Assembly (NCBI GenBank): GCA_028534125.1
Contig: CM052832.1
Span: 10,230,001-10,294,000 of the forward strand
From: Lama glama
Taxonomy: Eukaryota
DNA length: 64,000 nucleotides
Direction of reading: 5' to 3'
The translations under genes were made by a program, and so were the position numbers. Position 1 is the first letter of the stretch. Each line of letters opens with the position of its first letter. The notes beneath the pieces were generated by a model. It saw nothing but the letters and a program-made list of their open reading frames with translations, searched no databases and had not been told where the DNA came from. Positions 505-36,009 of this stretch are shown one piece after another.

Positions 505-510
505 TTTATT
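505..510 (-). terminator. Candidate poly(A) signal (AATAAA) of the ADCY10-like gene
   Basis: TTTATT on + at 505-510, about 545 nt downstream of the TAG stop at 1056-1054. Confidence 0.5.
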
Positions 511-1053
511 TTGGCAAAGCTATAGACAGCAGTGACTGTAAGCAGCTAGCATATTTAATATGCACACTACACAATATCTTAAAAAGGAGAATTTGGGACT
601 TTTCTTTGTGTTATACATAATAAAAGAATCATGGTCCCTTCAGATAATTTTTGTTTGTATTAACATATGTATTCTTGAATTTCTTCTTCATCCTTATTCT
701 CCTTGACATCAGCCACTCTGACAAATCCTGAAAGCAGGAACATAAAGAATAATATAAAAACAAAGAATTTCCTTAGCAATTACAAATTTAACTCATGGCC
801 TGGAAAAGAAGATTTGCTGGGCTCTAAAGCAAGAAACTATATTCTTTCCTCTCTTTTTCTTGCCCACATCTTATCATTTACCTTCTTAGATATTACATTG
901 TGATTTCTAAGGCCTTCTTTCTCCCTTAGTGACCAACCAGCTACACCAAGGGAACAATCTATTTAAGCTGGGACCAAGGAGGAACTTTCTATGGCTTAGA
1001 TGCTGAAACAAAGGGCTGAGAGAGGTTGAACAATATAAGGGGTCTCTGTCTGT

Positions 1054-4000
1054 CTAGGCTGGGTCCAGCTCTGTGAAAGAATGACAGTTACCTCTGGAGC
1101 AAGGACTAATCCTCATATCTGCACATCCTTTCTTATTTGGAGTTGTAGCCTTTGACTGCTGTGAGTAAGAATCTGAGACTGTTCTTTGTCTCTCAGACAA
1201 GGGTTCCAGGAATGGATGCTTACTCTGTATTCCTAAATTTCCTTCAAAGGAGTTATTTTCCTCCAGGAATTCTCCTTCTATCCAAATCCTGGTAAAGCAG
1301 GTGTCAAAAGGTCTGATGGACTCTCTCCTTCCATATCTCATTACAGAGGCTTTAAGCTCAGAGACCCACTGGTGATAGACAGGGCAGGTCACACATCGAG
1401 AGAAGAACTCCTTAATGTACTGAAAGGAAAGGAAGGTCCATTAGCTCAGGGATTACTTTCTTTCCTCCACTCCACCCCACTCCATTACAACAGTCCACAC
1501 TCAGTATACTCATTCAGGGATGGAGGAATAGAAAGGAGTTATTGATGGCAAAGCAGGCCCCCCAAATCGGTTTTGAGATACAGAGAAACTGGAATGTCTT
1601 AGACTCAGAAAGCACTGGCTGTGGGGAGATGTCAAATGACAGACTGAGACAGAAGTGGTCCTTTGAGAAGGGCTAAATGTTAATGTTTTAATGGTATTGG
1701 GAGTTGCTATGCAAAGTCAGAAAGTTAAGGAATCCAGTCCTGATGTACATGCAAGAATATCTGGGAGGAAACATGAGGTAGGTGAAAAGACTTTCTAGGT
1801 AGAGGGAAAAAAAGGGTTCAAGGAGGAAAAAGAGACAGAGGCAGCAAGGAGAAGGGTAAGGGAGGGCGGCAGGTGGCAGAAATAGTACCACAGGGTCAAA
1901 GTATAACTTAGGTGTCAGTTGATGAACAAGAGAGACAGGTACCTTGAGGGCCTGGTGGTGAGTCTCTGAGGGAGTATGCTTGAAGACACCCTCTGGTATT
2001 TTCTGTAACATTAGCACATGGCACTCAAGGAATCGGACAAAGCCATGTGAACCAAATAGTGAAGCATTGGTTCTTTTCACCAGCTGGCGAGCCCTGGAGA
2101 AGTGGTGCTCAAACAGATTCCACTGCGAGTCCTGGGCAAACCTGGAGGGAAAGAATCACAGCTCTCAGCTCTCTCCCCTGCTTATCAACCATGGCTTTTC
2201 AATAGAGCCGTCACTTCTTTAAGGCCCTATGACCTCCTGGACAGTCAGAATTGTGATTCTGGTAAGTGACCAAGGCTGCTAACTCACATGTAAGGAGACT
2301 AAAAAGGAGACCAACGATATTCAGACTTACCATGTCTTATCTAGCACTTAAATGTAACCCTAAACTTGGCCCTTAAACTATAATCCAAACATGTTAAGGG
2401 ACAAAAAGAACCCTTTCCATAAGATGAGGGGAAAATGGGAGGTGAATGGTCTTTAGAAGTGGGTTAGAGATGTGAAATAGTCCTGCCTGGGAGGGCAAAA
2501 GGCAATAGCTTAAATGACACCATGGTGTCCTCAAATTTCTACCCTTTCCAATAGCCCTAAGTAAGACTCTGGTACCCCACATTACCACATGGCCAGAGAG
2601 GCGTGGACCCCCAACATGACATTGCTCTGAGAAGTTAGAATGCAGCTGTGCTCATAGTGCTGAATGAAACGCAGACATTCCCCAAAGGGCCGACACAGCC
2701 ATCCTGTGGACAGAGAAAAAAAACAGGCCAGTATAAGTTGTCATGTAGGAAGTGTTACAGAAGGTGTGTGGTACAGGGGAGGAGAAACACCCGAAAGGCA
2801 GACACCCCTGAATCACAACTTGGTTCCTAGACTTCAAGGAACCAGCCACGCCCAAGGGACAGGCTCATGACTGCCTTTCTGCTAAACCTAGGGCCCTCCC
2901 TGAGGCCTGAACCCCTTAGGAGCACAGCAGAGCCCTGCACAAGATTTACCTTCTCCGTAGAGCAGCAGATCTAAGCAAGCAGAATAGAAGCAGGCCAGGC
3001 CAAGGACATCATGACCCTGGGAAATGAGCGCCCACTGACTCTCCAGCACATGGACACACAGATCAAATCTGCCGAGAGACAGAGCCACTGGGACCAGCTA
3101 GAGAATGGGGATGATGGTACAGGAGAGGAGGGGATCTTACACCTTCAAAGCAGCTTAATAAGCTCTAGATCTCCTCTCCTTAACTCTACTTATACGGAGA
3201 GCATGTGTGTGGGATCAGACTTGTCTCCAAGCAAAGGAAATGGGAAAATGCCTCTGAGACAATGCCCAGGGTCTTGAGCTATGGCAGTTACCTACCTCCC
3301 CAGAGAAAAGTGGAAAAAAAAGGTTTATGTAGTAACTTAGACTCTGCATTTCCACTCCTGACTCCCCACACTAAAGAAATGCTTCCTGGAGTGAACAGAA
3401 CTATGGAAATGGAACAGCATCCCCGTCTCCACTCCAAACTTCTCTGGAAGATCGTACCCTCCCCTCCCCTCTTAGGCAACAAATACAAAGGACAGAAAGT
3501 GATCTTAATACTTCTTCTTCAGAAATGCAGATCTGAAGAGAACTGAGAGAATTAGATTCTCCAGAGCTGGTTTCTTGAAGTGTCTGCATATCTCATGAGC
3601 TTGAAAACCTAAGGAGGTTAAAGAGTATTGTTTGATCTCTAGTGGTGAACCTGGCCTCTTTAAAAGCCCCAGGCCCACCAGCCCCAGGCCCCATTACCCA
3701 GCTTGATGGAGAAGTCAAGATGGCCGAGGCAGAGCTTGGTGTAGGCCAAGGCCTGCATGAGCTGGGCTGTGGCCAACAATCCCTCCCTGGAGAACCAACA
3801 CAGGGTGCTTTTCTGAATGGCCATCTGCTCACAGTGCAGCCACTTCTCCCTGTCACCCATGTTCTGGGAGAGCTGGGAGAGGGCCACATAGGTAGAGACA
3901 ACCTGTGGGGCAACAAACACGGGCAGAATATTCTGACTGTCCAGTCACGCCACATTTCCACCTCATCCCTTTCCTGCACGAGAGCCCACTGCACGCCTTG

Positions 4001-7000
4001 CTGCTCCCTCAGTGAGCACTCCTGGGGTCTCCACCACTCACCTCATCACCGGTTATGAAAACAGGCTCCTTCTCACCCCTCCACATCTAATTTGATCATT
4101 CTCACTGCCTGTTCTTTAAGCAAACCACTTTCTCTACCTATCCCTCTTCTTTTTCTCCAATCCAAGACTTTCCCCTTCAAAATGCTGGCCAAACTGTACC
4201 TCTTTTATGTTTTCTCTAATTAAGGCCTCTGATTCTTGCTCCTCAGAGGTCTTCAGAACTGCCGCCTAGATCTCTGTCATCAGTTACACACAAATTTGAC
4301 ACCGCTGATGACATTCTTCTTGAAACACTGACTTCATTAGGTTTCCAATAGGATGATAGTATTAAAATATAAGTAGACTCTGTCACTCCTCAGAACCCAC
4401 TGACGGCTTCTCATCTTCTTCAGAGTAAAAACCAAAACCCCTTCAGTGGTCTACAAGGCCTGCACCGTCTGCCACCCCACCCCCAACCCCAGACTCTCTG
4501 ACTCATCTCCTGGCTCTTCTTCTCTCCTCCCTCCTCTCTAGTCACACGAGCCTCCTGCCTGTTCCTCAGACACAGAGGGCATGCCTTGTGCACTCTCTCT
4601 GCCCTCTTCCTGTTCACTCTTCCCCGGATAGCCATATGACTTACTCTCTCATCTCCTTCAGATATTTGCCCAGATGTCACCTGCTCCGGGAAGGCTTTCC
4701 CTACCACCTTATTTAAACTTGTACCCTCCAGCTTCCAGAACTCCATGTCCTCCTGCCTCCACTTAGTTTTCCCTCATTGCATTTATTATCACCTAACACA
4801 CTATATATTTCACTTATCTATTGTCTGTTTCCCTGGAACCAAGGTCAGTCCCTGGCACAGAAGGGGCGTTCATCAAATATTTGTTGATCAGATGGATAAA
4901 AGAGAGATACAGACAGATGGACACTAAAATTAGGAAGACGCATTTCCCTTTCTTCTTTTTACCTAAGTCAGCAACTCCAACCCTTTTTTTAGATCATGGA
5001 CTTCTTTGAGAATCTGATGAAAGCTCTGACCCCTTCTCTACCTCCCATCACTCCCTGGATGCTCTTTTGAACATACACACAAAAGTCGACATTCAGTTCA
5101 GAGTTCACAGATAGCCTCGCACCTGGAAGCCCATCAATAAACTGCAGATTGAGAACCCTGCTCAAACAACACGATCAGCAGTGTCCTGTTAAGTCTGGGT
5201 TACTATGGAACCATGCTTAACCAGGGACTTAGCAGGGTCCTCTCCCTAACATTTTAGGTTTCTGACTGAGGTCCATAGGTAAAACAAGGACTTGCTTACC
5301 TGGGCTTCACTGGCAAACTCCTTGGCTGAATTCTTCTGCATAAGAGTGGCCAGGCAGGCAAACCTGCGGCTGCTGGCTGTGGCCTCCAGGTTGTAGAGCT
5401 GCCAGAGCAAGGAGAGGCAGTGCACCCGCTGCTGCAGGACTGCCAGCTTCTTCTTACTGGTGTGAAGCACAGGTGGTTAGCCTGCCCTTATTCTTCACCA
5501 GTGTCCTCTGTCCCTCCCCACAAGAAATCTGAATCTACCTATCCACAGACTTTCAGACTAGAAAGGTTCCTGGAATCCCACTACTTCTAACCCCATATGC
5601 CTTTTAAATTCATCCCTCTTGACCAGGAAAAAAGTTAAGAGATGTTTTTAAAAAGGTTCACTCTCTGAATTGTTACTTTGGTTGAATATATTTCCTATGA
5701 ATTATTATACCTCAGTAACTAGGGAGCAATTTAATATTATGTATATGTCAGAGAAATAATATTAAATTGCTATTTTATGTGTATATGTACACACAATACA
5801 CATATATGTATCTTTATTTGAAAGAGACAGGATAATACCACACTCCAAAAACAAAGTCCTCATTTTGCTACACTGAATTGGCCGGGAGAGTAAGGTAAAC
5901 GAACTGGAACTGTTATATGCCTGAAAGGAGGAGTCTCTTTATTTCAAATAGGCAACGCCAGGCCGGGCCCTAGATTAGTTCTCTGTGGCCCTAAATGGAA
6001 CCAGGGCAAGTTGACCAGGCTTCTCACTTCTCACTAGTGTTGTTCAAAGGTTGGCTCTGGGAACAGGAACGCCAGTATTTTTCTAGGAATGTTTGGAAAA
6101 TGACACCAAACCAGGTCCAAGGGAAGCTCCTTTTTAGCAGTCGAAGGGCTTGCCTAGCCAATTTTTTGGCCAAGGTGATCTGGCCCATGTTGAAACAGAC
6201 CTGGAGATGGGAAAAAGACAAACAGCGATGCAAATGTGGGAGGAGTGCAAGAGTCTGGATACGACACACTGGCTTTTATTTTGGGAAGTGTACTTGAGGC
6301 CACTGTGGTGCTCGAGTGAGCTGAGTTAGAACAGAGCCTGGCTACACAAACAAGCACCAGTAGGGCCATGAGCAAGCAAAAAAGTGAGAAAACAGAAGCC
6401 ACTCTCTTTTCTCATCTCCCACACATTTGTCAGTGAGCAGGTGAGGAAGTCTGTGATAAAGTGATGCTGCCAGACTCTGATGGGATTGTCATTTGCACAG
6501 AGACTAAGATGTTTCAGATGCAATGAAAGCATCTGAGATATCACCTAATCCTGTATCTCACTTCATAAACAGGTTGTACTGCCATAGTGCATGTAGGGGT
6601 AGGAGCTGAGAAACCACTTTGAAGTTATCATGTACCTTCATGTTCTAAGGCTAAATCAACCAAAAAAGTGATAAAGTCCAAGGTGATTTCAGTACAATCT
6701 TGGGAAGACTGCACAATAATTCTTTTTTTATAAAGAGAAAGAAATAATTATTTCACTTTGCTTCAAAGACCTTTTGTTTGAAATATAAATAATGCAATAC
6801 TGTGGACAACTCTAGTAATCCCTTTGGTGTTTAAAGACATTGTACACATTAGGTTTATTCTCCTAATCAGGGTATCTTGAGGTTTACATTGAAATTAGTT
6901 TTTATTTACTTTTTTTTAATTTTAAAGCTCAGCTCTGTAACAAAACACCCTCATGGTTTTAGGGAGTCTTTATTTATAAATTGATAAATAATTATTCCAA

Positions 7001-10000
7001 CACATTTTGTTCTGTTGGATTTAACAGGAATGAGGCTGGGAGAAGTTGCTGAGTTGTCCTGAGTTATTCATACAGAATAAATACATTTACTCCTATGTGT
7101 TCTTTGAAAATGGAATGTCTCATGGCATGCTTTCCCCAGAATTTCTATTCATTATACAAATCTCATTCTCTGAGGAAATTTGTTATAAATGATATAGAAT
7201 GATATACAAGGCATATTATTTATTTATTTTTAAAGCAAGTAGTAGAATGGAGTATAGAAAGCTCCTATTTGTATATAACAAAGGAAGAGGGGAGATTGTA
7301 TGCATTTATGTATGCTAAGCCCCTCTGGTAGAAAACAAAGATATATAACCTTGAGGAGGGGACACAGCAGCTTAGAGATGGGGTAGGGAGGAGACTTTGA
7401 AATGTATGTTCCTTTTTTCTTTCTAGCTTTACTGAGATATAGCTGACATATAACATTGTTTAAGGGGTACAATGTGAAAATTATTTTTATGTAACTGACA
7501 TAGAACCTTCTGTTAGTTTTAGTAATACAACATAATGATTCAACATTATGTATATGCTGGAAAATTATCACCATAATGAGATTAATTAAATTCTGGCACC
7601 ACACAGTTACATTTTTTTTCTTGTGATGAGAACTTTTAAGATCTACACTCTTAACAACTTTCAAATATACAATACTGAATTGTTAACTACAGTCACATGC
7701 TGTACATCACATCCCCAAAACTTATAACTGGAAGTTTATACCTTCTGACCATCTTCACCCATTTTGTCCACTCCCCCATACTCGAAAATTAGTTTATATA
7801 CACTCTGATGAGAAAAGTACATGAAAAGGTAATTCACAGAAATAAATGACCAATAAACATATAAAAAAAGTACCTTATTAATTAAGAAATATACATTAAA
7901 ATATAATTATCATTTACGGATTAGCAAGTACAAAGAAGACTTATAATATTTGATGTTGGTAGGGATGCGAAGAAATGGGAAGAACTCAAATTGACACAAT
8001 ATTCTGCCAGACAATTTGGCAACATATTTATTAAATATATTCATATCTTCTGCTTTAGCATTTCCACCTCTGGAAATTTCTCTTACAGAAACACTCTCAC
8101 AAGGGAGTAAAGAGATATTTATGAGAATATTCACTGTACCAATGTTTATAATAACCAAAAATTAGAGATAACTTAAATGTGCATGTAGAAAGGAATGATT
8201 AAATAAATTTGACATATGGATACAATGTAGTATTGGCAGCTACAACTACGATTGGATATATGCCAATATGTGAATATGTTCAATCTGCATTATTAGGAAT
8301 AAAAGTCAGCTGCAGAAGAAAGAATACAGAATATGATTCTATTTGTAAAAAATGGAAAACAATAATGATATGACTGTATGTGTACAGCTGGTGGAATTTG
8401 CACTACATTATTAACTACACTAGGGGTGACATGGGATTAGTAAGAGCTCTTTCACTCTACATATAGTTCTGTTTTGAATTTGTATAACCTTTTATCACAT
8501 TTATCATCACACACAAAAAACAAAGAGATTTTAAAAGAAATAACAAAGTAACCCTCAAGGGAAAATAACCCAAACTTCAACGTCATCCCTCATCCTCACC
8601 TCTGATCGAAGACGGCAGAAAGTGGCCTCCTCAAACTGACAGATCTTCACCTTGTGCTTTTTCAAATATGAGAATGCTGAGGGTCGGCCCAGAAGACTGC
8701 TTGCCTTCCTCAAATAAAAGAAGGCCTCCAAACAAGACACGAGATGGAGTAACTGGATTAGGATTCGGATGCTGCTAGGCACGCGCTTAGGGTGAAGGTT
8801 GGATCAAGGTTTCGGCAAGTTTGAACTGGGGCTGGATTTAGTTAGAAATGGGGACTAAATGGACTACGCATGCAGGAGTCAGGGACAGCGCCGACAGCAC
8901 GTGCTGCTCCTTCGCTACCGCATTCCCACTTCATGTTTTCTCCTAGGCCCATTACAGCTCCTTTCTCCCATTTTCCTCCACTTTTCATTCCAGGCTACTT
9001 GACAGTAAGAAATCCTAACAAATTCCCTCAGTCACTTGGCTCAGATCAGGGGCAGAGAGCAGAGCTTGCTCACCATATAATTATCTGACAGGTCCAAGGA
9101 GGCAGCAGCAGCCTCCAGCAGGTAATAAAATGCACACGTGGTTTCTCCAATGACCAAGCAGTGCTGGGTGAGGGGTGAGAGCACTAACTTCAGGATCTCA
9201 TCACAGTGGCAGGGCTTTGTGGTCAACATATCTTTCTCCGGGTTGGTCTGAGCCAGTCTCCGGTTCACTTGATCCAGGAACTCTTCCTCTGTTCTTTGTG
9301 AGAGAAGATGAAGAGCTGAGAGAGGCCACAAAGCAGACACTCTTGCCGGACCATTACCAGGTCTCAAAGCCACTCTGTCCAGGAAGCTTTCCTTTATAAC
9401 TGACTAATTCTATGTCTATCCTTCTCCTCAATCACTCCGTAAGTTTTTGAAAGTCAGGGACCTGATCTATAACGGCAAAGCCCTATTAGGGAGTTTTAAA
9501 AACCCAAAGCCAATCTAAGTATCTCACAAACTAAATGGGGAAATGACCATATCTGAAGAGTAAATTAAACAGTATTCCACGAAAACATAAAAAATGATAC
9601 AAAGCAGTAAATAATACATTTCTCTATTAGCACATTTGAATTCTGTCATGGCACTTTGAATATTATTTTACACAATGTTACCATCTTATCCTACAATAAC
9701 CTTGCCATTCAGGCAGCCAAATTTACCTTTTACAGATGAAGAAATTGAGGCTCAGAGAGTGTAAGTGACTTATATACGACCTCACAGCTACCATGTAGAA
9801 CCAAAACTGGAATTCACCTCTCTAGCTATTAATCCAGTGTACTTTCCACAGGCACCGTGAGTTCAAAAGAGGGCTGATCTCTCTGAGACACAATGATTGA
9901 AAAAAAGTGGGAACTGAGGAGGGCTCTGAAGGATGGTGAACACTCTGATAAGTGGAAGAATGTGGATGCCACTGAGTATTTTTAAAAGGGAGAACTGTGT

Positions 10001-13000
10001 GAGCAAAGATAAAAGGTAAGTGTAGGGGTGATTTGTGTGGAATATAGATTTTTGTTTGAAAACTGTAAGAAATCAGGTTGGATAAATGGGATAGGAAACT
10101 CTAGAGTGGCTGATGGGTTCAAGGTAGCGACATTTAAAATTGATAAGACATTAGAAAGTCAGGTGGTTCATGGTTATGGAAATAAAGTCATTTTAATATC
10201 ATCTGGGTTCAAAAGTAATTGAGAAGGCAAATTTATAGCTGAAAAAAAAATCTGTATGTACAAAGCATTTGAGAGTAATTAAAGTTTTTCTCTAGCTCTA
10301 AGAAATAATTTCCCTACAAAGAATCAAAAATTGCCTTTCTGATTCTCTGTTAGCTTGAATTTGGGGCCAAGCACAAGAGTCACCACTCCTAGATGGTCAG
10401 CTGCCTTCCCTGTCTGCAGGTAAGGTGAATACCCTAGTTAAATGATCATCTGTGGCTCACTTTCTGGCCCCCTTCATGCCCACTCTCAGCATCTCCATCT
10501 ACCTGTAGTGTTCATTTGTGAAGGTCTCCTGACTTCTGGGTGATTTTGTCTGGAACTGAAAACTATCTGTAGGGAAAAAAAGATGATTATCTTTAATTAT
10601 CCATGCCTGGTATTAACTGAGAACATTCAAAATTCCTGACTCTATTTCCTTTGCAGCTTAGTTCATGAGCTAATTGCCTCCCTCATTATAAAAATGGTAA
10701 GTTTGGGTTTACTATTAGCCTTACACACAAAATTAGGGTGCTAATTTTTTTTCTTAAAGGCAACTATTTGTGATTCAAATGGTAACTTCTTTCATTCGCA
10801 AACCTCCCAAACCAATTCCTAATTCTGTTTGCAAAAGAAAAGAATAAAGAATGTGTCCATCTGGCTTGATGGCTAATTCTAATAGTAAAAATCCATGAAT
10901 ATATATGGATCAGGTTTATGAACAGATGGGAGTGAACCACAGAGCCTAAGACCTAGTGAAGAAAATCGTGAAGGCACAAGATGCCACAGTTCACCAGTCA
11001 GTGGGGGTTTTCAGTGGGCCAGTGGGGGTTTTCAGCTTTACCTAGCTGGCCTTAAATACACTTTATCCTCCAGATTTGACTCTTCCTCTGCATCTGTCTT
11101 CTGATCAAAAAGCAAAGACTGGGAATGATGTGGAGATGTTACCTATTAGGACTCAGCAACACAGGAGGTGGGATTGAAAAGAAGTCCAAGAGAACCGTTA
11201 TAGGGAGGACTTGTGTTAAATAAAAGAACTGGTTCTCTGATTATTTAATGATGTCTCATAAGGTAAAGTAAGGCTAAGGTAACTAAGGAAACTGGAACTT
11301 GGCAGCACCACTGCAATGCACAATTCCCAGGGCACCATCCTATCGCAGCCTGTGAACAGCACCCTCCAGGTGTAGGCAGTACCTGTTTTGCATGGCCATG
11401 CACAGAGGCCCTGGGTCTGGGAAGCCTCCTCAGGGTTCGGCTGTGCTGGAAATGTCTTAAGCCTCTCACACCCAGATTGACTAGGCTGTCTAATCTAAAG
11501 CTGACACTGACCTCTTAAAAACAAAAGGTCATATAGGAAATATGAATGATAATGTGATTTCTTCATAACACCAACCGGGACATTCACTGTTGCTTTCCTT
11601 TTTCCCCTCAGAAAGTACAAAAGTGCAAATGCCCACAGAGCTCATCAGCCAGTGACCAATTTCTCCAAGTCACTGGTCCACCTTCATAGAGTCATTAAGA
11701 ATGTTACAGCTAGATGAGGTATTAGGATCATAGGTCAACACCTTCATTTTGGTCCTTTACCACCACCAATTTATCATCTCTCCCATATCCCTCTCCCCTG
11801 CCAACACCAACACCAACTCTTCTTCTGTCAAAGTAGAAAAAGAGACCATTTCGCTGGGTCTTGATAGCTGTCTTCAAATATGAAAGAAGGTACAACTCTG
11901 AAAAAATGCGTGAAAAAGTTGCCAGATGGTAGATTTCACCTGCATGAAAGCAGCTTTCTGACAGCTACTGACAATGAAATGGGCTGTCCTACAACATAAG
12001 CTAACTGAAAATGTTAAAACAAAGAGGAGGAACTCTTACCTGGGATGTGGTAGAAGGATTACAGGTTTGGGAGACTATCTATCCACTAACGAGTCTTCTT
12101 TAAGTAGCTAGCTCTTACTTATCTTTCAAATCTCACTTCTGGCATCATCTCCTTCAGGGGAGAGTCCTATCTTACTCCTTTCTCAGGCTGGGCTAACAGC
12201 CCTTTCTCGATGTACCCAATCCCTACATAGTCTATTTTCATCACCTTTACCATACCATATTGGAATTCTTTATTTATATGTCTGCATCACCCCCAAAAAA
12301 CTGATAATTTTATTTCGTATTCTTACAACAGTATCTGATACACACAAAGACTCCACGTACGTGTACTGAGCTGAATAGTTACTGAGCTGAATAATTATAA
12401 AAACAGTAACGAAAGTGTACTGAGCACTAACCATGTGCTTGGCACTATTCAAAGCCCTTTATAAATTTTAACTCATTTAGTCCTCACGACAATCCTATGA
12501 AATTGGTATTACTATTTTCCTCAATTAATTGAGGTTAAGTAACGTGCCCAAGATTGCCAGCCAAAACAAGTATGATCTCTACAGTTCCTTTTACCTTTGA
12601 GATTATATTTTTCTTATTTCTGGCATTTCAGGGATAAATGGCTCTTTCCACCTATTTTTCTCCCTTAATCTGATTTCACCTTTTAGATGAAGAGCTCCAA
12701 GTACATGAATAAGAAGTGCTACCCACACGTCCCCTGTCTGCCTCCTGGATTTACCTTGGGGAGAAGGCAGCTGCAATTTGTCTATGATCACTCGTGTTAG
12801 TATTGAGCCAGTATCTCTGTAGCTACAGAATCGGGAGGTCCCACTGGAACTCTTAGTAGAACAGATGGCAAAACGGTGGAAGGGGACAAAGTCGCCCCCC
12901 TGACAGCTCCCACAGCGGCAGGCCAAATCTTGAAGAAAGCAGGCACATTCCAGGTGCAGGGCTACCTGCTGTGCCTTGGGCCACAGCTCCCAAGCTGCTT

Positions 13001-25000: not shown

Positions 25001-28000
25001 GTAGTAACTGATGCAGATGAGAAAATCTGCTGGTATTAAAATGGGCAGCAGGAGGTGAACTGGATCAGTACAAATGATCATCACATATAAATGTACATTC
25101 TTTACACAAACACACAGTCTACACGATGACTCAAGAACTACAAAATAACCTTCTTCAGAAGGCTTTTCATTATGTGCTTCCTCAGGGTTTGCTCAAGTGC
25201 AGAGTCTGGATCCAACTCCAGGGCTGTTCTTAGAATGTCTGAGAAAAGGAAAACAAACAAAATGTCTCCATGCATGTGAAAAATTAATCTTTGAAATTTT
25301 GGTATTGGATACAAAGGGCCAAGTAACTTACCAGCACTTGTCCGGTAATGTGGCAGGTAATCCAGGCACTTGTCAAAATGCTCATCGAAATCAAATGGGT
25401 CACTGATCCGCATATCTCTTAACTACAGAAAGGAACTGCTCAATTCTGTGCCCACCCACCAACTGGATTACCTTTGGTTCCTTAACAGAGGGGCTGAGGA
25501 TGCCAACTCCCTTGTTTATCTCTTATCTTTCCAGCCTTACTGTTCTGCCTCGTCTATCTTCCTGGGAGAATATTCCCTGCCTCCCTCTAAAATAGAGTTC
25601 CAACATTTGTTGGTTTGGTCAGGCCATGTGTGAGTACCACCAGAGCACTTCCCCGGGTAGTAGGAAGGCCTCTGCAGGACGTTCAATGGATGTGAGCAGC
25701 CTCCTACCTTCACAGCTTCGTCCTCCCTCATGATTTCCACTTCAAACATGTACTGTTCACAGAGCTTCCAGCAGTTCCAGGACAAGACAATCTCATTTGC
25801 CTGAGCCAAACGCTGAGCTAACTGGACACCGTCCACATCCTGCCCAATCACCAAGAGGTACTGTCGCTGCTCGTCTCCAACAATAACCTGGGAAATCCGT
25901 CCTGCAGACAGACCTATCCAGGAAAAAGGAGACACGTGATGAACAGCCAAACTCAGTTGGAAAACTTTGCAAAGGGCGGGGTCTGGAATCCTCACATGGT
26001 TTTATGCATCATGCCAATCTCGTTATTGTCATGAAGTATTAGGTGAGCGCAATCTCAAAAGTAACACCTTGCTCCAGATTTCTTTGTCTTAAACACACCT
26101 AGAGACAGACATTCAAATAAGCCTGAGTTGTATGAGGGAAGAAAAAAGAGATCTTAGGTGTCTGAGAGTTTTGTTTCTAAATTGTTCTTCTAAAGGACAG
26201 CTAGGTCCTGATGGCAGAGACCAAATGGTTATGCTCAGAAACTGCTGACCACACCAGTCCTCCTCACATGTAAGCAGCACTGAGACAGTAGACAATCACT
26301 ATTTTACCAGGCATGGGCTCTGCCATACGCTTTTATTCTGCCTCCTGTTTTTCTTGCCCTGGATTTCTTACTGCTAATAGGGCTGAAAAACTGGTTTGCT
26401 TGCCAGAAAAGAAATGCCTATAACCAAGAGAAGTCTGCCCTTAGGTAAGTCAGTCACCCAATCTACACTAAAAACAAGCGAAAAGTAGTTTTAAAAGAAC
26501 GGCAGAGACATATACTTTTAGCCAAGACAGAATAACAGGTAGTAAATTTACCACAACACCTGGAACAATCATGGAACCGGGAAAAAAGACACGAAACAAC
26601 AGAAACAACAGTTCTCAAGATACTGGCCATCAAGTAATTAAGGACAGTATACTTGAGAGATGAGAAACAAACAAGGTGAACCCTCTGATACCCCAGCTCA
26701 CTGCCTAGAGAGTTTCCAGTACACAGCTTGGAGAGAAGAAACCCAGGTATAGCCTGGAGGGGTCCCCGAGTTGAGGAGACAGAACTAGGAATCTGAGGGG
26801 CCAAGGTGGTTAGAGTTTGTAGGGCACTGTGACTACTGGAGAGTAGACAGAGAGAACTCCAGAGAACTGGGTCTCCCTCGGTCTTTAGCTGAGTACTGAT
26901 AAGTGAATCAATCTGAGGAAACAACTTGAGGCTACAGAAAGAACCACCTGAAAAGATTAGAGGGAACAATCTTTAATATCAGACAGGGCCGGGTATAGTT
27001 CCTATTCCCACTAGCCAGAGTATCAAACTTAATAATTCACAGGACATTAGGTACAGTACCCGGAAGGGGTTTGACTCAGGAACAGGGCAAAACTAGCTCT
27101 GGACTAAACACTGCTCTGGCCCCTCCAACAAAGTTTGAAAGTAAAACCTGAAAGTATCAAGTCAACTACATTCCAGAACTAAGTTCAAGAATATTTATAG
27201 AAATATTTAAAAATTCAACACTCAACAAGGTTAAATTCTACAATGTCTGGCACCTACCAAAAATTACGAGGTGTGCAAAGAAACGGGAAAATATGATTCA
27301 CAATTAGAAGAAAAATCAATCAGTCAAGCCCAGTGCAGAATAATACAAATGACAGAATTTGGAGATCAGGACATTAAAAAAGCTGCAACTATATTCTACA
27401 TATTCAAGAACCTAGAGAAAAGACTGAACAAGTAGGGACATGGAAGATATGGTATCTTCATATGGATGAAGACTATCAGGCTTGAGATGAAAAATACGTT
27501 AGATTGGATCAAAGGCAAATTAGACATTGCAAAAGAGAACATCTGTAAATTTGAAAACACAGCGATAGAAACCATCCAAAAATGAAACACAGGGAGAAAA
27601 AAGACAAAAAAAAATAAACACAGCATCAGTGAGTTGGACAATTTCAAGCAGCCTAATATGTGTGTAGCTAGACAGAGGAGGAGGAAGAGAGAAAAAATTA
27701 TTTGAAGAAATAATGGCAGAATATTTTCTAAATTTTACAAAAACTAGAAGCCTATAGATCCAATAATCTCAATAGGTCCCAAGCATAAGAAAGATGAAGA
27801 AAACTGTACCAAGGCACATGATAATCAGATTGCCTAAAATTAGTGACAGAGAAAAAAATTTTGAAAACAGCTAGGGTGGAAAAGGGAGAGACATTATATA
27901 CAAAGAAACAAAAATAAGGATTTCTTGTTGGAAACATTACAAGCTAGATGTCAGTAGAATGACAGCTTTAATATAAGAAGGGGTGGGGGAAGCCCCTGTC

Positions 28001-31000
28001 AATCTAGAATTCCATACCTAGTAGAGGTATCTTTCAAAAACGGGTGAATTTTTTCCAGACACACAAAAGCTGAACTAACACATCTCCAGCAAACCCACAT
28101 TATTAGAAATTTTAAAGAAAGTTCTTCAGACAGACAATGATAAATATTGGCAAGAGACTGGAACCTTCATACACTGCTGGTAGAAATGTAAAATAGTACA
28201 ACCACTTTGGAAGAAATATTAGCAATTTCTCTAAAAGTTAAATACGCATCTACTATATGACCCAGGCCTTTCATGTCTAGGTGTCTGCCCAAGAGAAACA
28301 TATGGATATGTCCATACAAAGACTTGTACATGGATATTCATAACAGCTTTATTTGCAAGTCAAAACCTGAGAACCCAATTGCTGATCAAAAAGTGAATAA
28401 ATAAATTNNNNNNNNNNNNNNNNNNNNNNNNNNNNNNNNNNNNNNNNNNNNNNNNNNNNNNNNNNNNNNNNNNNNNNNNNNNNNNNNNNNNNNNNNNNNN
28501 NNNNNNNNNNNNNNNNNNNNNNNNNNNNNNNNNNNNNNNNNNNNNNNNNNNNNNNNNNAAAAGTACCTACTATATGATATTACTTATATAACATTCTTTA
28601 AAAATGCAAAATAATCTCTAATGACAGAAAGGAGAGCTGTGGTTGCTTGGGGATGGGGAGGCGAAGGATGAGAGGGAGAGTTTATAAAGGGGCACAGGAA
28701 ACTTTAGTGAGTGCTGAATGTTCATTATCTTGATTGTGGTGATGGTTTCAAAATTGTATAAATATGTCTATGTACAGTATCAGATATGAATTATCTATCA
28801 ATAAAACAAAAATCAGAAGAACTAAAAAAGGATGGTAGGACAGGATAGATGCCATATAACTCAGAATATGATTCTTCACTACTGACTAGTCCTCAAAATA
28901 CAAATGAATAGCTGGAGTTTTGTGTCTAGAGCTAACCCTCCAATCCTGACTCTGCCACTGGTGAAACTTTCGCCCCTGTGTACAGCTTTTTTCCTATAGT
29001 ATTGTATTATATTTTTGATTATGTAATACAATGACATAGCTCAAAAACCAAACTACATAAAGAATATACATTAAAAAGTCTTGATTCCATCTATATACCT
29101 ATCTACACTATTTTCCCCTAATAGGTGACTTTTATTAGTTTCTTATATATCTCTCCAGTGTTTCTTTATACAAATATAAATAAGAAAAATTATTATTTTT
29201 CCTACTTGCATAAAAGGTAGCATACTAAACACAGTGCTTTGCATCTTGCTTTTTCTCATCTATGTTTTGGAGATACTGTTATATCAGAACATCTTTTTTT
29301 TTTAAAGCTGTAGAGAATCTCAGTGAATAAACATATTATTGTTTATTTAACCAGTCTACTATAGATATTGTTTTCAACCTTTTATCACAATCTGTATTGC
29401 AATAAATAATCTTATATACATGATATTTAATGCACAGTCAGGTATACCCATAGGATAAATGTTCAGAAGTGGGATTGCTGGGCTGAAGAATAAATGCATT
29501 TGTAATCTGGGTAGAGATGACTGGATCACCCTCTACAGAAGTTACACCACTGCTGACTCCCATCAACACTGTGTAAGAAGGCTTATTCCTCGCAGCCTCA
29601 CCGACAGTGTGTCCAGCATCTGAATTTTTCCATATTTGTAGGTAGGGAATGATCTCAATGTACTTTCAATTGGCATTTTTCTTATTACTAAGTTGACCGT
29701 TTTTTCACACATTACAAGAGATGACTTCTTTGTTTATGTGCTATTTATTCATTCTTTTGCTCAGTTTTCTCCTAGAATGTTAGTCTTTTCTTAACTTCTA
29801 GGTGTTCTTTCTATAGAAAAATTTACCCTTTGTCTACATGATATGAGTCGCAAATATTTTTTTTCCAAGTTGTCATTTATCTTTAAAATTTTTAATGTTT
29901 CCTGCCCACCCCCCCCCAACTTATCACTCTTAATAGCTACTACCTATCTTTAACTGCAGGTCCTGCCCTTCTCTGGTGTGGCAGATGCCAAATTTCTCCT
30001 GTATCTCCAGACTGCATTTTGCCACCAGGGTAATGATGTCACTCAGTTGATTCTGTTCCACTGTCCAGAGTGCAAGGAGCACATTCCCTGTAGACACACA
30101 AGACAGGCTGACAGAGATCAAATATTTGAATTCACTTGCCATGGCAGAACCCTCAATAATGCAAAAGGTATCATGCAAGGTGTCACACAAGGTTTCTCGC
30201 CCTATACATTATGTTAGGTTAAAATACTGCCTTAATCCTCAAAAACCATTGAGCATATAAAAACATGACTAAGTAGAAGCTGAAATGTTCCTAAGGTTTA
30301 AAGCTATTTTTGGTAATTCTTTCCCCACCAGTATCCTAACAGAAGGGGCGGGGTACTAGCTAAGAGGCCCACAAAATATATGTTTACATTCAAGTTGAAT
30401 TTTAAGATTTTAAGTGGTTTCATTAAGTTTAAATGAAAAGACAGGCCAGCTCTGTGGCACACAGCTGTAAATGATCACAAGAGTTCTCCAGATAGGAGAC
30501 TCTTGACTCCTCTCCCTCTCCTATATGTAGCTTCTGTTATTAATGACCAAGCTTCTCATAAGTTTTCTCACGAATGCTTTAAAGGCACTTATTTTTCTGT
30601 CAATCTGAACAAACTGTAAAATACATGGGAGCTTAACATGGACAAGGCTTTTCCATTAGACTGGGAGACCCTTTGAGGCAGAGACTGTCTTCCTCATCTG
30701 TGTTTCCTCAGGGCCCAGCACTTAGAAAAATAATCAAACAATGCTGAATAAACATGCCAAATTCCACCTAAAATACAGTCTTCCTCACTTCAGGGTGCTT
30801 TAAATATTCAGAAAAACTGAGAAATACCTGTAATATTTAGGATATCCCCTCCAAAACAGAGCACATCTGAAATCAAGCAAGAGGGGAAAATGAATCAAAA
30901 TCAGATATGCTGGATCATGGCAGAATCACATATGATGAAAAGAATGGCCTTCTGAGTTTCCCTTTGTATCTTTTCTGGTCAATTTGTTCATTCCAAGGTT

Positions 31001-34000
31001 CAGACTCCCTCTTCCTTTCCCCTAGCTTCTCCTCAGATATGTCTGTTCTTATACCCAACTTCTCTAAAAACAGAAGGAAAGCCCTCTTGGTATCTTCAAA
31101 GCCATCCCCCTATTTGTGCTCTGGATCCTAGTCCCCCTCACCCTCTCAATAACTTCACTCCCTTCCTTATGTTCTTTCTGTGCCATCATTCCCATTAATA
31201 TCTTTGTAAAAAAAAAAACACACAACAAAATTAACCCACCTATTCTTGACTCTGCCTTCTTCTCTAGCTATGAGCTCAATTTTTCTGTTATATTCCCAGC
31301 CAAAAGAAAAAAATTCTCAGTTTATTCCAATCTAAACTTCCATCTCTACCACTTCACTAAAATTATCAAAACCACCCAAAGCATTCATCTTGCTATATTT
31401 AGTATTTTTCTGATATCACTGTATTTGACACCTTTTATTTTCAATCCACTAGGGCAGCGCTCTCCTTCTAGAGACACTATTGCCCTTTTGGCTTCAGGAA
31501 CACCAAATAGCCTACCTGACTGACTGCTTCACAGTTGCTGTTGTAGGTTCTTTCTCCCTAATCATAATCACAATCTCCCCTTGGAGTTCTTTACAGTCCC
31601 CCCATGTGGACTCAATCAGTTCTTAACTTTAAATAAAATCTTTATGCCATCAATTCACTTTTCATCTCTAAAGATCTATTCTCTAAGCTCAATCACAGCT
31701 AACTTCGTTGCCTCACTTGACTGACTTACTAACATCTCAAACTCAATATATTAAAAATAGAACCCTTGACTTTCTTCCTCAAAGCCTAGTCTTTCCCATC
31801 TCGGTATGTGACATCACCTTCAATTCGGTTACATAAGCCAAAAAAGTTGACAATTGTTTTCCTCACCATTTCCCACGGAAATCCAATACATTAGAAAATC
31901 CTGTCTGTTGAACTGCAAAATATATTTCAAGTCAGTTCATCTCCATACAGCTCCCTTCATTACCACACCTTAAGACTAATAGTTTCAGCCTTTACTGCAC
32001 ACTGAAATTGTCTGTAAGAAAAATCCTTAGTCCTGGGCTTACCCCAAGATATTGATTTAACTGATATGGGGTGAAGTCTAGACATCAGGAGTTTTAACAG
32101 CCTCCTAAGTGGTTATCTAACGTGCTGCCAAAGTAGAGAACCACTAACCTCATCTAAATCTCTAACTTCTCTCCACAATTATTCCAATTGCCTCTTCCAG
32201 CGTCCAGTTTTACCATCTACCTTCCATCAGTTCCCTATAAAACAATCTCCATGAGGGCAGGTACCATGTCTGACTTTCCTGTGTATTTCTAGTACCCAGC
32301 AGTTCCTGGTATTATAAATACATGCATGATACATAGTTTCTATCTCCAGGAGACAGCTAAAATGAGCTTTAAAAATGTAAATCAGATCACATCACTCCCC
32401 TGCTAGAGTCTTTCAACAGTTTCCCTTCATACAAAAATAAATAATCCAAACTTCTATGTTCTATGGAGCTTGATGCTCTCCAGTCTCACCTCAAGCCACT
32501 CTTCTCCCTGCTAACTATGCTCTAACCACACTGGCCTTTTCAGTTCCTAGAACATGCCAAGCCTTCTCCACCTCAGAACCTTTTTACTTGGCATTCTTCT
32601 GCCTGAAATGCTCTACCCTTAGCTCCACACACAGCGTTCCTCACATCCGTTATGTCTCAGCTTACACAGCACCTTCTCAGAGATGTCTCCTGTGACCACC
32701 CTAATACAGAAACTCTTTCACCCTACAATTCTTTTCTTTTTTCCCACAACACCTTATTTATTTCCTTTGTAGACTACATACTCTGAAATTATCTTGTTTA
32801 CTATCTTCCTTCCTTGGAACCTACAAGAGGGCAGGTACTGTGTCTTGTTTTCCCATGTATTTCTAGTACTCAGCAACTCCGTTATAATACATACATGATA
32901 CATAATTTCTATCTCCCCCTTTCCCCTAAACTTGATGACATCCATTGAAAGACCTCAGGCAGAATCCTCAGTGGTAAGGGATTAGTCAAACAGCCACTTT
33001 ATGTGGCTTAAGGAGAGGCCACAAGGTAATTATTCTGGTGAATCTCAGAATGATGGAGTAACTATGGGACACTGTCAGTAAAGGAAGGGAATGTACATAC
33101 ATTAGTACTAAAGGGTGCAGAGCCAGTATAATTTGTTAGGTAGACCTAACTAGACTGAAAACGCCTCAAAAGTAGGTTTCTGTACCTCCTGCACCTATTA
33201 CGGTGTATGTCATAGTAGGTACTCAAAACAAGTTTACTGCACAAATAAGTTTTTCTCCTAGATTAGGCAAATATCCACAAGCTTAATACATGGCAGAAAA
33301 TAAAACACTCACTCCTACTTCACAGGATCAAAATGCAGTAACCAAATGGGAAGGTATGAATTGACACAACAATGTAAACTGACTTATACCTCAATAAAAT
33401 AAAATTAAAAAAAAATGAGGTGTGTTGTAAATTATACCTGATATACACACATGAAGCACATTGTATTTTTGTTAAAAGAGACAGCCTTAGGAATACTTCA
33501 TTTCAAAATAAAATACAAACATGCAGAGTTAAAATTAAAATTAGCATTTCCCCTCCTCTTTCTGAACACTGGGTCAATAGGATGTGAGATTGGGTAGAAT
33601 GGCAGGTATATGGAAAGATCTAGCTTGTCAGTGGCAACCTTAAGAAATAAAAGATGAGTGACACTAAAGGAATGACCTTCAGTATCCGTTTTAAGCACCT
33701 CAGGCCTGTTTCTGTTACAAACCCTCAGAAGCCCAGCACCACACTTCCTTGTTCCCGTACAAGGGTCACTCACGCTCCACGATGTCACTAATGTAATAAC
33801 TGAAGATGTGGGCCAGTTTGTCCATGTCATGTTCCGACTTGCAGCTCAGGCTGAATCTGTCCATTAATGCTGTAAACCCTGACCAACAAAGCAAAAATTA
33901 CTGTTAGCTGCAAATCCCAAACTTTTAGGCCTTAATCTCGCATTGGAACAGTGTAAAGAAAGCAGATCTCTTTAATATGAGTAATTTCACAATTCTTCTT

Positions 34001-34935
34001 CTTCATTTTTGAGTAATTTCTCTACTCTTTAATATGGTGTTACTTAGCAAGTACTCAGGGCCAGGCTGGTTGCTGCTGCCTCTAGGAGTCCAGAGGGCCA
34101 GCCTTCCCATGTTTCCAGGAGCTGCAGATGGTGAAGATTCACCCACAAGAGCCTTTTCCATCGGAATGCAGCTACTGCTTTCCCGCCACACCCTCTTAAG
34201 ACTCTCTGACCAAGAGAAAGGATTTCCCCAGATATGAAGAGCAGAAAAACCAGTAACAAGATTAAAGCTTCATGGAGAACTCATATGGTAAGCTCCTCGA
34301 GGACAGGCACCTGAATCACTCATTTTCATATTCATGACATAAACTCCCTAAGTATTTGTTAAATGAACGACCCTCCTAGTAGCTGCCAGGTCTCTTAACA
34401 CCTAGCACAATGGCGGGTACATACTTATGGACTCAAAGAATGAATTAATTGAGTGAATAAAATCACTAGACGAGGCGGAATACTTATTGGAAAACACTTG
34501 GGTTCAAAGTGTGCTGTATGGCCCCGAAAAAGTCCATTCCCTTTTCTGAGCCTCAATTTCCTCATCTCTGAAGTGAACTCCAGGGCTACGTCAGGTTAGC
34601 TTCTTGCTCTGAAAATGACCCTCGGTTTCCGGCGGAGGCGGCGGGAAATGCGGTGAAACCGCGCTTGCTTTGCTCGCTCCGGAGCCAGGCCCATAACCGC
34701 AGCGGCCCCTACGAGCTGAGGCCCAACGGTTGCCCCTCCCGCAGGTCGGGAGAGCAGCGGGCCTCCTCTCTCCCTCACCCGTCACGTGGACGCCAAGAAG
34801 GACGCCCTGGGCCGTGGCGAGCTCAGGTTCCGATCCCCGGGGCTTCCTGAAGACCAGCAGGTCAGGAAGCAGCGCCGCCAACCGGGCCTCTACGGGCCAC
34901 AGAGGCGGCGCCACCACCCGCTCGCCGGTCGCCAT
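1054..34935 (-). CDS. ADCY10P1: Adenylate cyclase type 10-like (soluble AC paralog; intact ortholog of human pseudogene ADCY10P1), 31 coding exons, ~1625 aa
   Basis: Hand-spliced exons on the minus strand: 34935-34779, 33878-33774, 30866-30828, 30087-29944, 25913-25708, 25422-25332, 25238-25150, 24549-24358, 23645-23524, 22271-22195, 22087-21898, 21413-21358, 20626-20473, 20318-20129, 18931-18845, 18212-17941, 17396-17260, 16566-16441 (GC donor), 14214-13945, 13084-12755, 10566-10503 (least certain), 9293-9074, 8725-8600, 6200-6028, 5456-5300, 3902-3698, 3608-3512, 3068-2950, 2703-2586, 2141-1943, 1419-1054. All phases are compatible. The ATG is in a perfect Kozak context (GCCGCCATGG). Peptides are collinear with human ADCY10 (e.g. 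LAALLPDLLV, FGGDIL, LLALW, FLCVFGLPG, RHEYTVIG, YEGGKGYGKS, IDEAQ, CFNMGQITLAKK, GHLDFSIKLG). It lies immediately downstream of NFYA, like human ADCY10P1. The symbol refers to the human ortholog; no official symbol for an intact copy is known to me. Confidence 0.9.
4300..4900 (+). mobile_element. LINE-2 3' fragment
   Basis: L2-type text (tgtcactcct..., cagatgtcacct...ctttccctaccacc, ...caaatatttgttga); boundaries approximate. Confidence 0.6.
7410..8500. mobile_element. Old LINE-1 3' fragments (two pieces, opposite orientations)
   Basis: L1M-type 3'UTR text (agctttactgagatatagctgacatataacattg..., gatctacactcttaacaactttcaaatatacaatac) followed by an A-rich L1ME-like segment. Confidence 0.6.
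9660..9850. mobile_element. MIR SINE
   Basis: Core ttttacagatgaagaaattgaggctcagagag...aagtgactt. Confidence 0.65.
12400..12560. mobile_element. MIR SINE
   Basis: actgagcactaaccatgtgc...actcatttagtcctcacgacaatcctatga...gaggttaagtaacgtgcccaaga. Confidence 0.65.
15010..15520. mobile_element. Possible ancient ERVL-type solo LTR
   Basis: TATA-like (ctattataaga) and AGTAAA signal in an LTR16/33-like context; recognised by eye only. Confidence 0.3.
15545..15755. mobile_element. MIR SINE
   Basis: tttaatcctcaaccaaccccatgaggtagg...ccccattt...gatgagaggactaag. Confidence 0.65.
19770..19935. mobile_element. MIR SINE
   Basis: aaactgaggctcagagaggctaagtgatttgtgccaag. Confidence 0.6.
26460..28810 (+). mobile_element. 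Degraded LINE-1 (5'UTR/ORF1 remnants and 3' end), interrupted by N-gap 28408-28558
   Basis: ORF1-like A-rich text (tatttgaagaaataatggcaga..., ccaaggcacatgataatc...), then the L1 3' region (gctggtagaaatgtaaaatagtacaaccactttgg..., ttcattatcttgattgtggtgatggtttc). Confidence 0.75.
29000..29900 (-). mobile_element. Old LINE-1 (L1ME-like) fragment
   Basis: T-rich, with gaagtgggattgctggg and tttaaccagtc motifs. Confidence 0.55.
31100..32920 (+). mobile_element. LINE-2 fragments with an inserted MER5-like hAT element (~32000-32145)
   Basis: L2 text (catctcaaactcaat, aaaatgtaaatcagatcacatcactcccctgct, cttctcagag) and MER5-type text (ggggtgaagtctagacatcagg...gagaaccact). Confidence 0.6.
33358..33416 (+). 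mobile_element. Very short young LINE-1 3' tail with poly(A)
   Basis: gaattgacacaacaatgtaaactgacttatacctcaataaaataaaattaaaaaaaaa resembles cetartiodactyl L1 3' ends. Confidence 0.5.
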
Positions 34936-35170
34936 GGCGGCGACGGGGCTGCGCGCCGAGCTACCCGAAACAGGGTTCCTCCGCGAACCAGCCAATCCTC
35001 AACGACAGCCCTGATGGGTCCCTCCCACCAGCCAATCAGTGCGGGCTAGCTTGGAGCAGCGTCAATCGAAAGCCGCGGCGGGCTCTGCGCCACCTGTTTC
35101 CCAGCGCTTTGGCCCCTCGCGCTGGCTTCCGGGGAGGGGACGAGCAGAAGGTCGGCAGGACAGCGCGTTT
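34600..35170 (-). promoter_or_regulatory. CpG-island promoter/exon 1 of the ADCY10-like gene with two CCAAT boxes
   Basis: Locally CpG-dense. CAGCCAATC occurs twice (CCAAT at 34992-34996 and 35032-35036), just upstream of the ATG at 34935. Confidence 0.75.
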
Positions 35171-36009
35171 CAAGGAATGTAAGCTGACGGTTTTAAAATC
35201 TCCGTGAAACGTGGTGAAGATACTTCTACGATGAAGCCTATCATCTGGGATAAGTATCAGTAGAGTGGTCTTTTTCCGGACAGAAACTTGGGTCATCTCA
35301 GTTTGTAAGGAAAAGTTCCATTGTTACCTGCCTAAAGCAAACTCAGGATGGCTTTTTAATTTACCGCCTTTAGATTAAGACTGTTTAACAGTGTCAGTCT
35401 TTTTCCTTAATTGTTAGCTTCTTCCATTTCTGATGTCTGCCAGGACAGGTCACTGGGTATCATGGGAGTATTACCCGGGGCTGTTTTGTCAAGTTCCCGG
35501 GCCCCTGACTTTTGTGTAATAAGGTCACGTTTGTGGTTGCCCATCTGTCGCTCAGATCTGTGAACACAAGACAGTAAGAGGACGATTATGTTGTGGATTA
35601 ACAGAAATGCATGTTTTCCTGCATAAATAAAAACAAAAATCTAAAAATTACATCTTCACTATCTTTACTTCTACAGTATCTTATAAATCAATGCTGGTAA
35701 CTAAAGGGCTAATTTTACTCATGGAATTACTTCATCGCGTTTTGATTAATACTTAAACGGTAAAACCAAATGGATGATCAATCCACAGGCGACAGGAAAC
35801 ACCTCCTCAGGAGGGTGAGAGGGCCAAAAGTGAAGGAAAAGAGATCAAGGGGATACACACAACTAAGAGGCTGGACACTCCCAAGTCTTGACACACTGTC
35901 CACAGAGCTCATGTCTGTCTATAGAGCTCAAAATATCAACACTATAAACATAGAACCCAGGGGATGCAGACTCCTTAATATTGAAGACACTTTTTAGCAT
36001 TTTTATAAA

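Follow-up and report, generated by a model that had tools for sequence, protein, structure and literature searches.

An apparently intact ADCY10 paralogue downstream of NFYA in the llama with replaced cyclase catalytic residues

Introduction

Human ADCY10P1 lies at 6p21, beside TREM2/TREML1 and NFYA, and is reported to be transcribed into 18-19-exon transcripts that are not translated. We were interested in whether the corresponding locus of the llama (Lama glama) encodes a protein and, if so, whether that protein is an adenylyl cyclase. A stretch of 64,000 nt (GCA_028534125.1, contig CM052832.1, positions 10,230,001 to 10,294,000) was analyzed, which is called the window below and is numbered from its first letter. 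An earlier note on this DNA had proposed a second soluble adenylyl cyclase (sAC) gene. Our results indicate that the window very probably contains the intact lamine orthologue of the RefSeq gene 'adenylate cyclase type 10-like' (ADCY10L), an ancient ADCY10 paralogue directly downstream of NFYA, of which humans have only ADCY10P1. The gene prediction itself is not new, as RefSeq lists it for the alpaca and dozens of other species.

Results

Gene model and reading frame

All sAC-like open frames of the window are on the minus strand, and the gene, to which the earlier note had given no strand, was placed there. A search with the largest exon (window:12756-13103, minus) returned vertebrate ADCY10-family proteins, including the koala 'adenylate cyclase type 10-like' protein P0005 (1624 aa) and macaque ADCY10 (P0039). 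When these two proteins were compared with the window by tblastn, about 30 collinear matches were observed from 34935 down to about 1300. Single-exon E-values were as low as 1e-60, which excludes chance similarity. The koala paralogue showed 53-88% identity per exon, compared with 27-62% for macaque ADCY10. Junctions were then defined by scanning frame-keeping donor/acceptor pairs, and the junction peptides were scored against the dromedary protein P0105 as a guide. Each junction had a single clearly best GT-AG pair, with the one exception of a GC-AG pair at the intron after exon 18. The junction peptides were identical to P0105 at about two thirds of the junctions and carried one or two substitutions at the others. 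The gene model is supported both by the collinear tblastn matches and by the GT-AG junctions matching dromedary peptides.

The resulting model has 32 coding exons on the minus strand from 34935 to 660, comprising 4776 nt; its product of 1591 aa equals P0105 in length. By frame bookkeeping, no stop, frameshift or N was found in the 32 exons and no lost splice site in the 31 introns, so the marks of a unitary pseudogene were absent. The frame is unbroken over 4.8 kb, and 62 splice sites are intact. The start ATG at 34935 has a perfect Kozak context (GCCGCCATGG), lies inside a CpG island (GC content 0.57, CpG observed/expected ratio (o/e) 0.88 over 34400-35400) and is preceded, 22 codons upstream, by an in-frame stop. 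These observations agree with the earlier description of a Kozak ATG in a CpG island and of a frame with canonical splice sites and no stop or frameshift. The size given there (31 exons, about 1625 aa, about 34 kb) could be reproduced exactly only when exon 31 was read through, and the conserved model is the one of 32 exons and 1591 aa. The features are listed below; exon limits come from the junction scan against P0105 unless the line says otherwise.

34400..35400, minus: CpG island and presumed promoter around the start codon (GC 0.567, CpG o/e 0.88)
34779..34935, minus: exon 1, ATG at 34935, H at the D47 position; 53/53 aa identical to alpaca
33774..33878, minus: exon 2, GT-AG; junction peptide identical to dromedary P0105
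30828..30866, minus: exon 3, 39 nt, N at the K95 position
29944..30087, minus: exon 4, first full codon is the N at the D99 position; PDB sAC match E 6e-8, from residue 100
28408..28558, no strand: assembly gap in intron 4, non-coding, with L1 3'-end-like flanks on the plus strand
25708..25913, minus: exon 5, C1 domain, Q at the R176 position; PDB sAC match E 1e-22
25332..25422, minus: exon 6
25239..25331, minus: intron 6, 93 nt, in frame and stop-free; coding in the Pseudorca RefSeq model, spliced out in camelid models
25150..25238, minus: exon 7
24358..24549, minus: exon 8, start of C2, R at the K334 position
23524..23645, minus: exon 9
22195..22271, minus: exon 10
21898..22087, minus: exon 11, end of C2, S at the N412 position, R416 kept; PDB sAC match E 2e-15, residues 407-465
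21358..21413, minus: exon 12, 56 nt
20473..20626, minus: exon 13, Walker A motif GGKGYGKS
20129..20318, minus: exon 14; acceptor 33 nt upstream in one alpaca isoform
18845..18931, minus: exon 15
17941..18212, minus: exon 16
17260..17396, minus: exon 17
16441..16566, minus: exon 18, followed by the GC-AG intron
13945..14214, minus: exon 19
12755..13084, minus: exon 20, largest exon
10503..10566, minus: exon 21
9074..9293, minus: exon 22
8600..8725, minus: exon 23
6028..6200, minus: exon 24
5300..5456, minus: exon 25
3698..3902, minus: exon 26
3512..3608, minus: exon 27
2950..3068, minus: exon 28
2586..2703, minus: exon 29
1943..2141, minus: exon 30
1224..1419, minus: exon 31, donor agaGTAAGC after 1224; second donor gagGTAACT after 1092
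1054..1056, minus: TAG of the earlier note, reached only with exon 31 unspliced (1625-aa model)
660..727, minus: exon 32, last coding exon, stop TAA at 662-660; 21-22 aa matching camelid C-termini
505..559, minus: poly(A) signals, ATTAAA from 559 and AATAAA from 510

The 3' end

In annotated orthologues (camelid, whale and others), the donor at 1224 (or 1092) is joined to a 32nd exon at 727-660. The peptide encoded by exon 32 (21-22 aa) matches the C-termini of dromedary and alpaca at 100% identity and that of Pseudorca at 95%. Alpaca isoform X2 (1635 aa) uses the donor at 1092 and then exon 32, and this donor is still upstream of the TAG at 1056-1054. The unspliced 1625-aa form matched none of the alpaca isoforms of 1530, 1582, 1602, 1604 and 1635 aa, nor the 1591-aa dromedary protein. 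Moreover, the AATAAA that had been described after the TAG was not recovered: neither AATAAA nor ATTAAA occurs between the TAG and position 700 (about 350 nt), and the signals lie instead at 559 and 510, beyond the TAA at 662-660. Because the orthologues splice from 1224 or 1092, upstream of the TAG, to a conserved exon 32, the last exon of the earlier note is most likely an unspliced reading of exon 31.

Catalytic residues of the cyclase domains

In class III cyclases, two aspartates hold the two catalytic metals, and an Asn and an Arg stabilize the transition state. For sAC we take Lys334 to be the substrate-defining residue, Asn412 and Arg416 to be the transition-state residues and Lys95 and Arg176 to be the bicarbonate site. 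These positions were compared in a family alignment including macaque ADCY10, whose motif positions carry human numbering, and 9-11 placental ADCY10L copies per site. The window and the placental ADCY10L copies showed the following residues.

D47: H
D99: N
K334: R; Q in panda
N412: S
R176: Q; R in Cercocebus
R416, T405, K144 and the G-F-T loop: kept; T405 is A in Pseudorca

None of the mammal copies compared has either metal-binding aspartate or the catalytic Asn, and nearly all also carry other residues in place of the substrate Lys and the bicarbonate Arg. At D47/D99/K334/N412/R176 the residues are H, N, Q, Q and G in the koala and H, G, H, K and S in the echidna. In reptile copies, position 47 is E or G and position 412 is K or Q, but D99 is retained. 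The K95 position is N in the window; because N also occurs here in ADCY10 of gar, frog, gecko, turtle and alligator, this position alone is not diagnostic. For positions 99, 176, 412 and 416, exon-by-exon alignments to PDB entries likewise gave N, Q, S and R, respectively. The equipment of a competent cyclase is thus largely replaced: H and N stand in for the two C1 aspartates, only R416 is kept in C2 while K334 and N412 are not, and the bicarbonate residue R176 is absent. The cyclase-homology fold of C1 and C2, on the other hand, was recognizable at the sequence level, with PDB sAC matches to exons 4, 5 and 11 and a PF00211 score of 42 bits in P0105. Pfam searches of ten single-exon frames gave no match, the pieces being too short. 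Conservation of ADCY10L among therians is highest in C1 and C2, with mean majority fractions of 0.955 and 0.953 versus 0.875-0.911 elsewhere.

Because both aspartates and the Asn are lost, cAMP (cyclic AMP) synthesis should be abolished, and ADCY10L probably has no cyclase activity. Several points weigh against this conclusion. It is drawn from residue identities only; exon 1 showed no significant sAC match in the PDB comparison, D47H being read from an ungapped motif alignment; and His and Asn are themselves able to bind metals. The proposal of a second soluble adenylyl cyclase stands as far as an ADCY10 paralogue is concerned, and probably does not hold as to its function, since the catalytic residues are replaced (D47H, D99N, K334R, N412S). 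For this protein, the name 'adenylyl cyclase' is probably a misnomer.

Selective maintenance

Amino acid divergence of ADCY10L was compared with that of true ADCY10 in the same 17 mammals (136 species pairs). The ADCY10L/ADCY10 divergence ratio had a median of 0.87 and a range of 0.58-1.72, the high values all involving platypus. ADCY10 itself is essential for male fertility in mice (PMC6660944). At 699 sites invariant in 18 other placentals, the window carried only three private changes. One of them, R to Q at residue 173 (exon 5) in an 'IGQ' motif, restores the residue of true ADCY10; the other two are Y136C and C343Y.

The 0.87 ratio, the 3/699 private changes, the unbroken 4.8-kb frame with 62 splice sites and the intact copies found in reptiles and in mammals ranging from monotremes to camelids together strongly support purifying selection on ADCY10L, as the earlier note had suggested. 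Judged by these protein rates, therian ADCY10L is kept about as tightly as ADCY10. A point against this reading is that the comparison was made at the protein level.

Identity, distribution and age

The product was identical to the alpaca RefSeq isoforms P0356 and P0366 at 1585/1591 and 1586/1591 residues (99.6-99.7%), with 5-6 residue differences that point to another individual, assembly or sister species, and to the dromedary protein at 1556/1591 (97.8%). The RefSeq 'adenylate cyclase type 10-like' models of Vicugna pacos (XP_072801149.1, XP_031544379.1) and Camelus (XP_031290599.1) are the same gene, with the same junctions and last exon. A search with P0005 returned models of about 1600 aa with this name in placentals, koala, monotremes (echidna), turtles and alligator, the closest matches being camel proteins. 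Dozens of placentals were represented: carnivores, whales, ruminants, camels, horses, bats, moles, hedgehog, sloth, armadillo, elephant, tenrec, rabbit, pika, squirrels, lemurs, loris and both New World and Old World monkeys. The alpaca matches, the wide occurrence of models of this length and the divergence ratio given above bear out the claim of a real protein-coding ADCY10 paralogue.

Hominoid, myomorph and hystricomorph entries were absent among the best 120 ADCY10L matches, whereas ADCY10 matches from these groups were plentiful, and the chimpanzee had only ADCY10L models of 660-671 aa. This absence and the short chimpanzee models give hints of ADCY10L losses in apes and some rodents.

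The gene found upstream, also on the minus strand, is NFYA, with an exon at 42140-41961 (PF02045, E 3e-14) and the next at about 41176. Together with the 6p21 placement in the literature, these exons support the view that the locus is the NFYA-linked site of human ADCY10P1; the opposite flank, with TREML1, falls beyond the window. A CpG-rich block at 60000-62000 (GC 0.64, CpG o/e 0.72), broken by an N gap at 60943-61234, is probably the NFYA promoter. Further assembly gaps in the NFYA part of the window were found at 43263-43466, 46083-46227 and 53405-53544, in addition to 60943-61234.

Quick maximum-likelihood trees were rooted on catshark, with SH-aLRT (Shimodaira-Hasegawa-like approximate likelihood ratio test) values as the only support measure. 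Mammal ADCY10L and a second turtle/alligator copy (sauropsid 'a') formed one clade (SH-aLRT 100), in which the window sequence was sister to alpaca, then dromedary, within the mammalian part. Mammal ADCY10 (100) and the other sauropsid copy 'b' (99) formed clades separate from ADCY10L, and frog and caecilian fell outside all three amniote groups. Because mammal ADCY10L groups with sauropsid 'a' and the amphibians lie outside, the trees indicate that the ADCY10/ADCY10L duplication predates the amniote ancestor; they do not settle the branching order of the three amniote groups.

One further protein, P0091 (255 aa; Logan contig of 2187 nt, primate cluster), aligned without introns over exons 14-18 at 83% identity. 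This product stems from a spliced transcript of the locus in primates, may be human-derived and was not used.

RNA evidence

Of the words sampled from 20100-25950, 42-44% were present in four RNA-seq runs belonging to a single study of the reproductive system. Exons make up 23% of this interval. Since the proportion of words exceeds the exon share, these libraries also hold intron or DNA sequence and give no proof of splicing. Splicing in this species is accordingly predicted from splice-site quality and RefSeq isoform models. Both points count against the gene model as a description of a mature transcript.

Skipping of exon 12 (56 nt, 21358-21413) was computed to shift the frame and to introduce a stop after 497 aa, leaving a product of C1 and C2 only. 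The truncated form sACt arises from ADCY10 through exon 12 skipping (PMC12802110). Skipping of exon 12 in ADCY10L, likewise a small frame-shifting exon just after C2, would mirror the origin of sACt.

Assembly gap and repeats

A run of N at 28408-28558 in intron 4 begins 1386 nt past the end of exon 4 (29944) and lies 2495 nt before the start of exon 5 (25913). In the koala, dromedary, Pseudorca and alpaca proteins, the residues encoded by exons 4 and 5 adjoin, and the window shows no difference from dromedary in the junction peptide. As the two exons abut in all four orthologous proteins compared, no coding sequence is expected in the gap, and the continuity of letters across it is therefore irrelevant to the reading frame. 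Judged by eye, L1 3'-end-like sequence on the plus strand occurs on both sides of the gap (28100-28820), and intron 23 carries a further L1 3' end, on the minus strand at about 7230-7680, as seen from the translations. This L1-like debris fits the decayed repeats that had been reported in the introns.

P-loop region and proposed function

At residue 518, the sequence GGKGYGKS conforms to the Walker A pattern GxxxxGK[ST]. The GK[ST] core was kept in 21/21 aligned mammal copies, down to monotremes. In dromedary P0105, the closest full-length protein, Pfam AAA_16 scored 29.1 bits, below its cut-off of 32.6, and AAA_22 scored 19.2 bits, below its cut-off of 27. For ADCY10, the role of the P-loop/STAND region is still unknown, and no nucleotide effect was seen in the purified full-length enzyme (PMC12802110).

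We propose that the pseudo-dimer of C1 and C2 probably binds a ligand or mediates interactions. It would be coupled to a nucleoside triphosphate (NTP)-dependent switch formed by the STAND and helical-repeat regions, and the protein would probably act in reproductive tissue.

Discussion

Our results can be read in several ways. The replaced positions could still support a nucleotidyl cyclase, with His50 and Asn102 (window numbering) serving as metal ligands, perhaps for Mn2+, another cation or another substrate. The high conservation of C1 and C2 would fit such an enzyme, as would the retention of R416, T405, K144 and the G-F-T phosphate loop, and the replacements are conserved (H, N, S) rather than random, with His and Asn being potential ligands. 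However, every placental copy compared departs from the canonical class III catalytic set at 4/6 positions, and both aspartates are needed for two-metal catalysis, as is established for the class. Moreover, the G, E, K or Q found at these positions in koala, echidna and reptile copies looks like drift, which fits lost catalytic constraint and not a newly fixed chemistry. We therefore consider an active cyclase unlikely, and a protein that has lost catalysis the better account of C1 and C2.

It could also be argued that no functional protein is made at all and that the locus is a transcribed relic like human ADCY10P1, its frame open by chance. The human and apparently the chimpanzee copies are degraded, and protein-coding status in the llama is read from sequence rather than from protein or spliced reads. 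A chance origin is nevertheless very improbable for a 4.8-kb open frame in 32 exons with every splice site intact, in a gene that diverges no faster than ADCY10, shows only three odd residues at 699 invariant sites and is also modeled as intact in three further camelids and dozens of additional mammals. Still harder to credit is the idea that the intact appearance is an assembly artefact, with an absent or disrupted exon concealed by the gap or by a misjoin. The gene span does contain one gap of estimated size, but it is embedded in L1-like sequence, with 1.4 kb and 2.5 kb separating it from the flanking exons; exons 4 and 5 adjoin in the four species named above, and all 1591 dromedary residues are accounted for.

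An intact gene for a protein probably without catalysis can be compared with three known systems. ADCY10 (sAC; structures 4CLF, 4OYA) shares the order of C1-C2, a P-loop/STAND-like region and a long helical C-terminus, a similar length and coding-exon count and the small frame-shifting exon 12 just after C2, and its structures are matched by single exons (E 1e-22, 6e-8 and 2e-15). It differs from ADCY10L in sequence (27-62% identity per exon, separate clades since before the amniotes), at the catalytic sites (D47H, D99N, K334R, N412S and R176Q in ADCY10L) and in chromosomal place, as ADCY10L adjoins NFYA. Human ADCY10P1, known here from papers only, has the orthologous position by NFYA synteny and is likewise multi-exon and transcribed; its transcripts are reported as untranslated, whereas the frame in the window is intact. 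STAND NTPases (Apaf-1/NLR, and MalT/AfsR with TPR sensors) resemble ADCY10L in combining a P-loop NTPase with a conserved Walker A, helical repeats and a distinct N-terminal domain, and ADCY10 gives weak NB-ARC and TPR matches. The difference is that the Pfam matches are below curated cut-offs, and that even ADCY10 is not known to oligomerize or to switch with NTP.

Taken together, we lean towards viewing ADCY10L as an amniote-wide pseudo-cyclase that would have lost catalysis more than 160 million years ago and is constrained as ADCY10 is. Its dead C1-C2 may act as a ligand sensor or partner-binding domain on a STAND-type switch, and the gene may have gone unstudied because hominoids, and possibly mice and rats, lost it. 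Any particular partner of C1-C2 is far less probable than the absence of cyclase activity. Searches of the literature for ADCY10P1, ADCY10L, 'adenylate cyclase type 10-like' and sAC duplication found no study of the mammalian paralogue, in line with the earlier note, which knew of no functional characterization. The only gene-symbol match was ADCY10L1, in a chicken candidate-gene list. A 2025 biochemical paper on sAC refers to a single ADCY10 locus (PMC12802110).

These results suggest that cattle, pig, dog, horse, rabbit, macaque and most other mammals keep a second, equally constrained member of the family that lacks the catalytic residues. Its likely non-catalytic nature and the lack of study make it a moderate lead rather than a discovery. 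If ADCY10L does modulate cAMP, bicarbonate or ATP signaling, in sperm or elsewhere, work on human and mouse misses a component of livestock and most model mammals, and the loss of ADCY10L in apes would amount to a clean natural knock-out.

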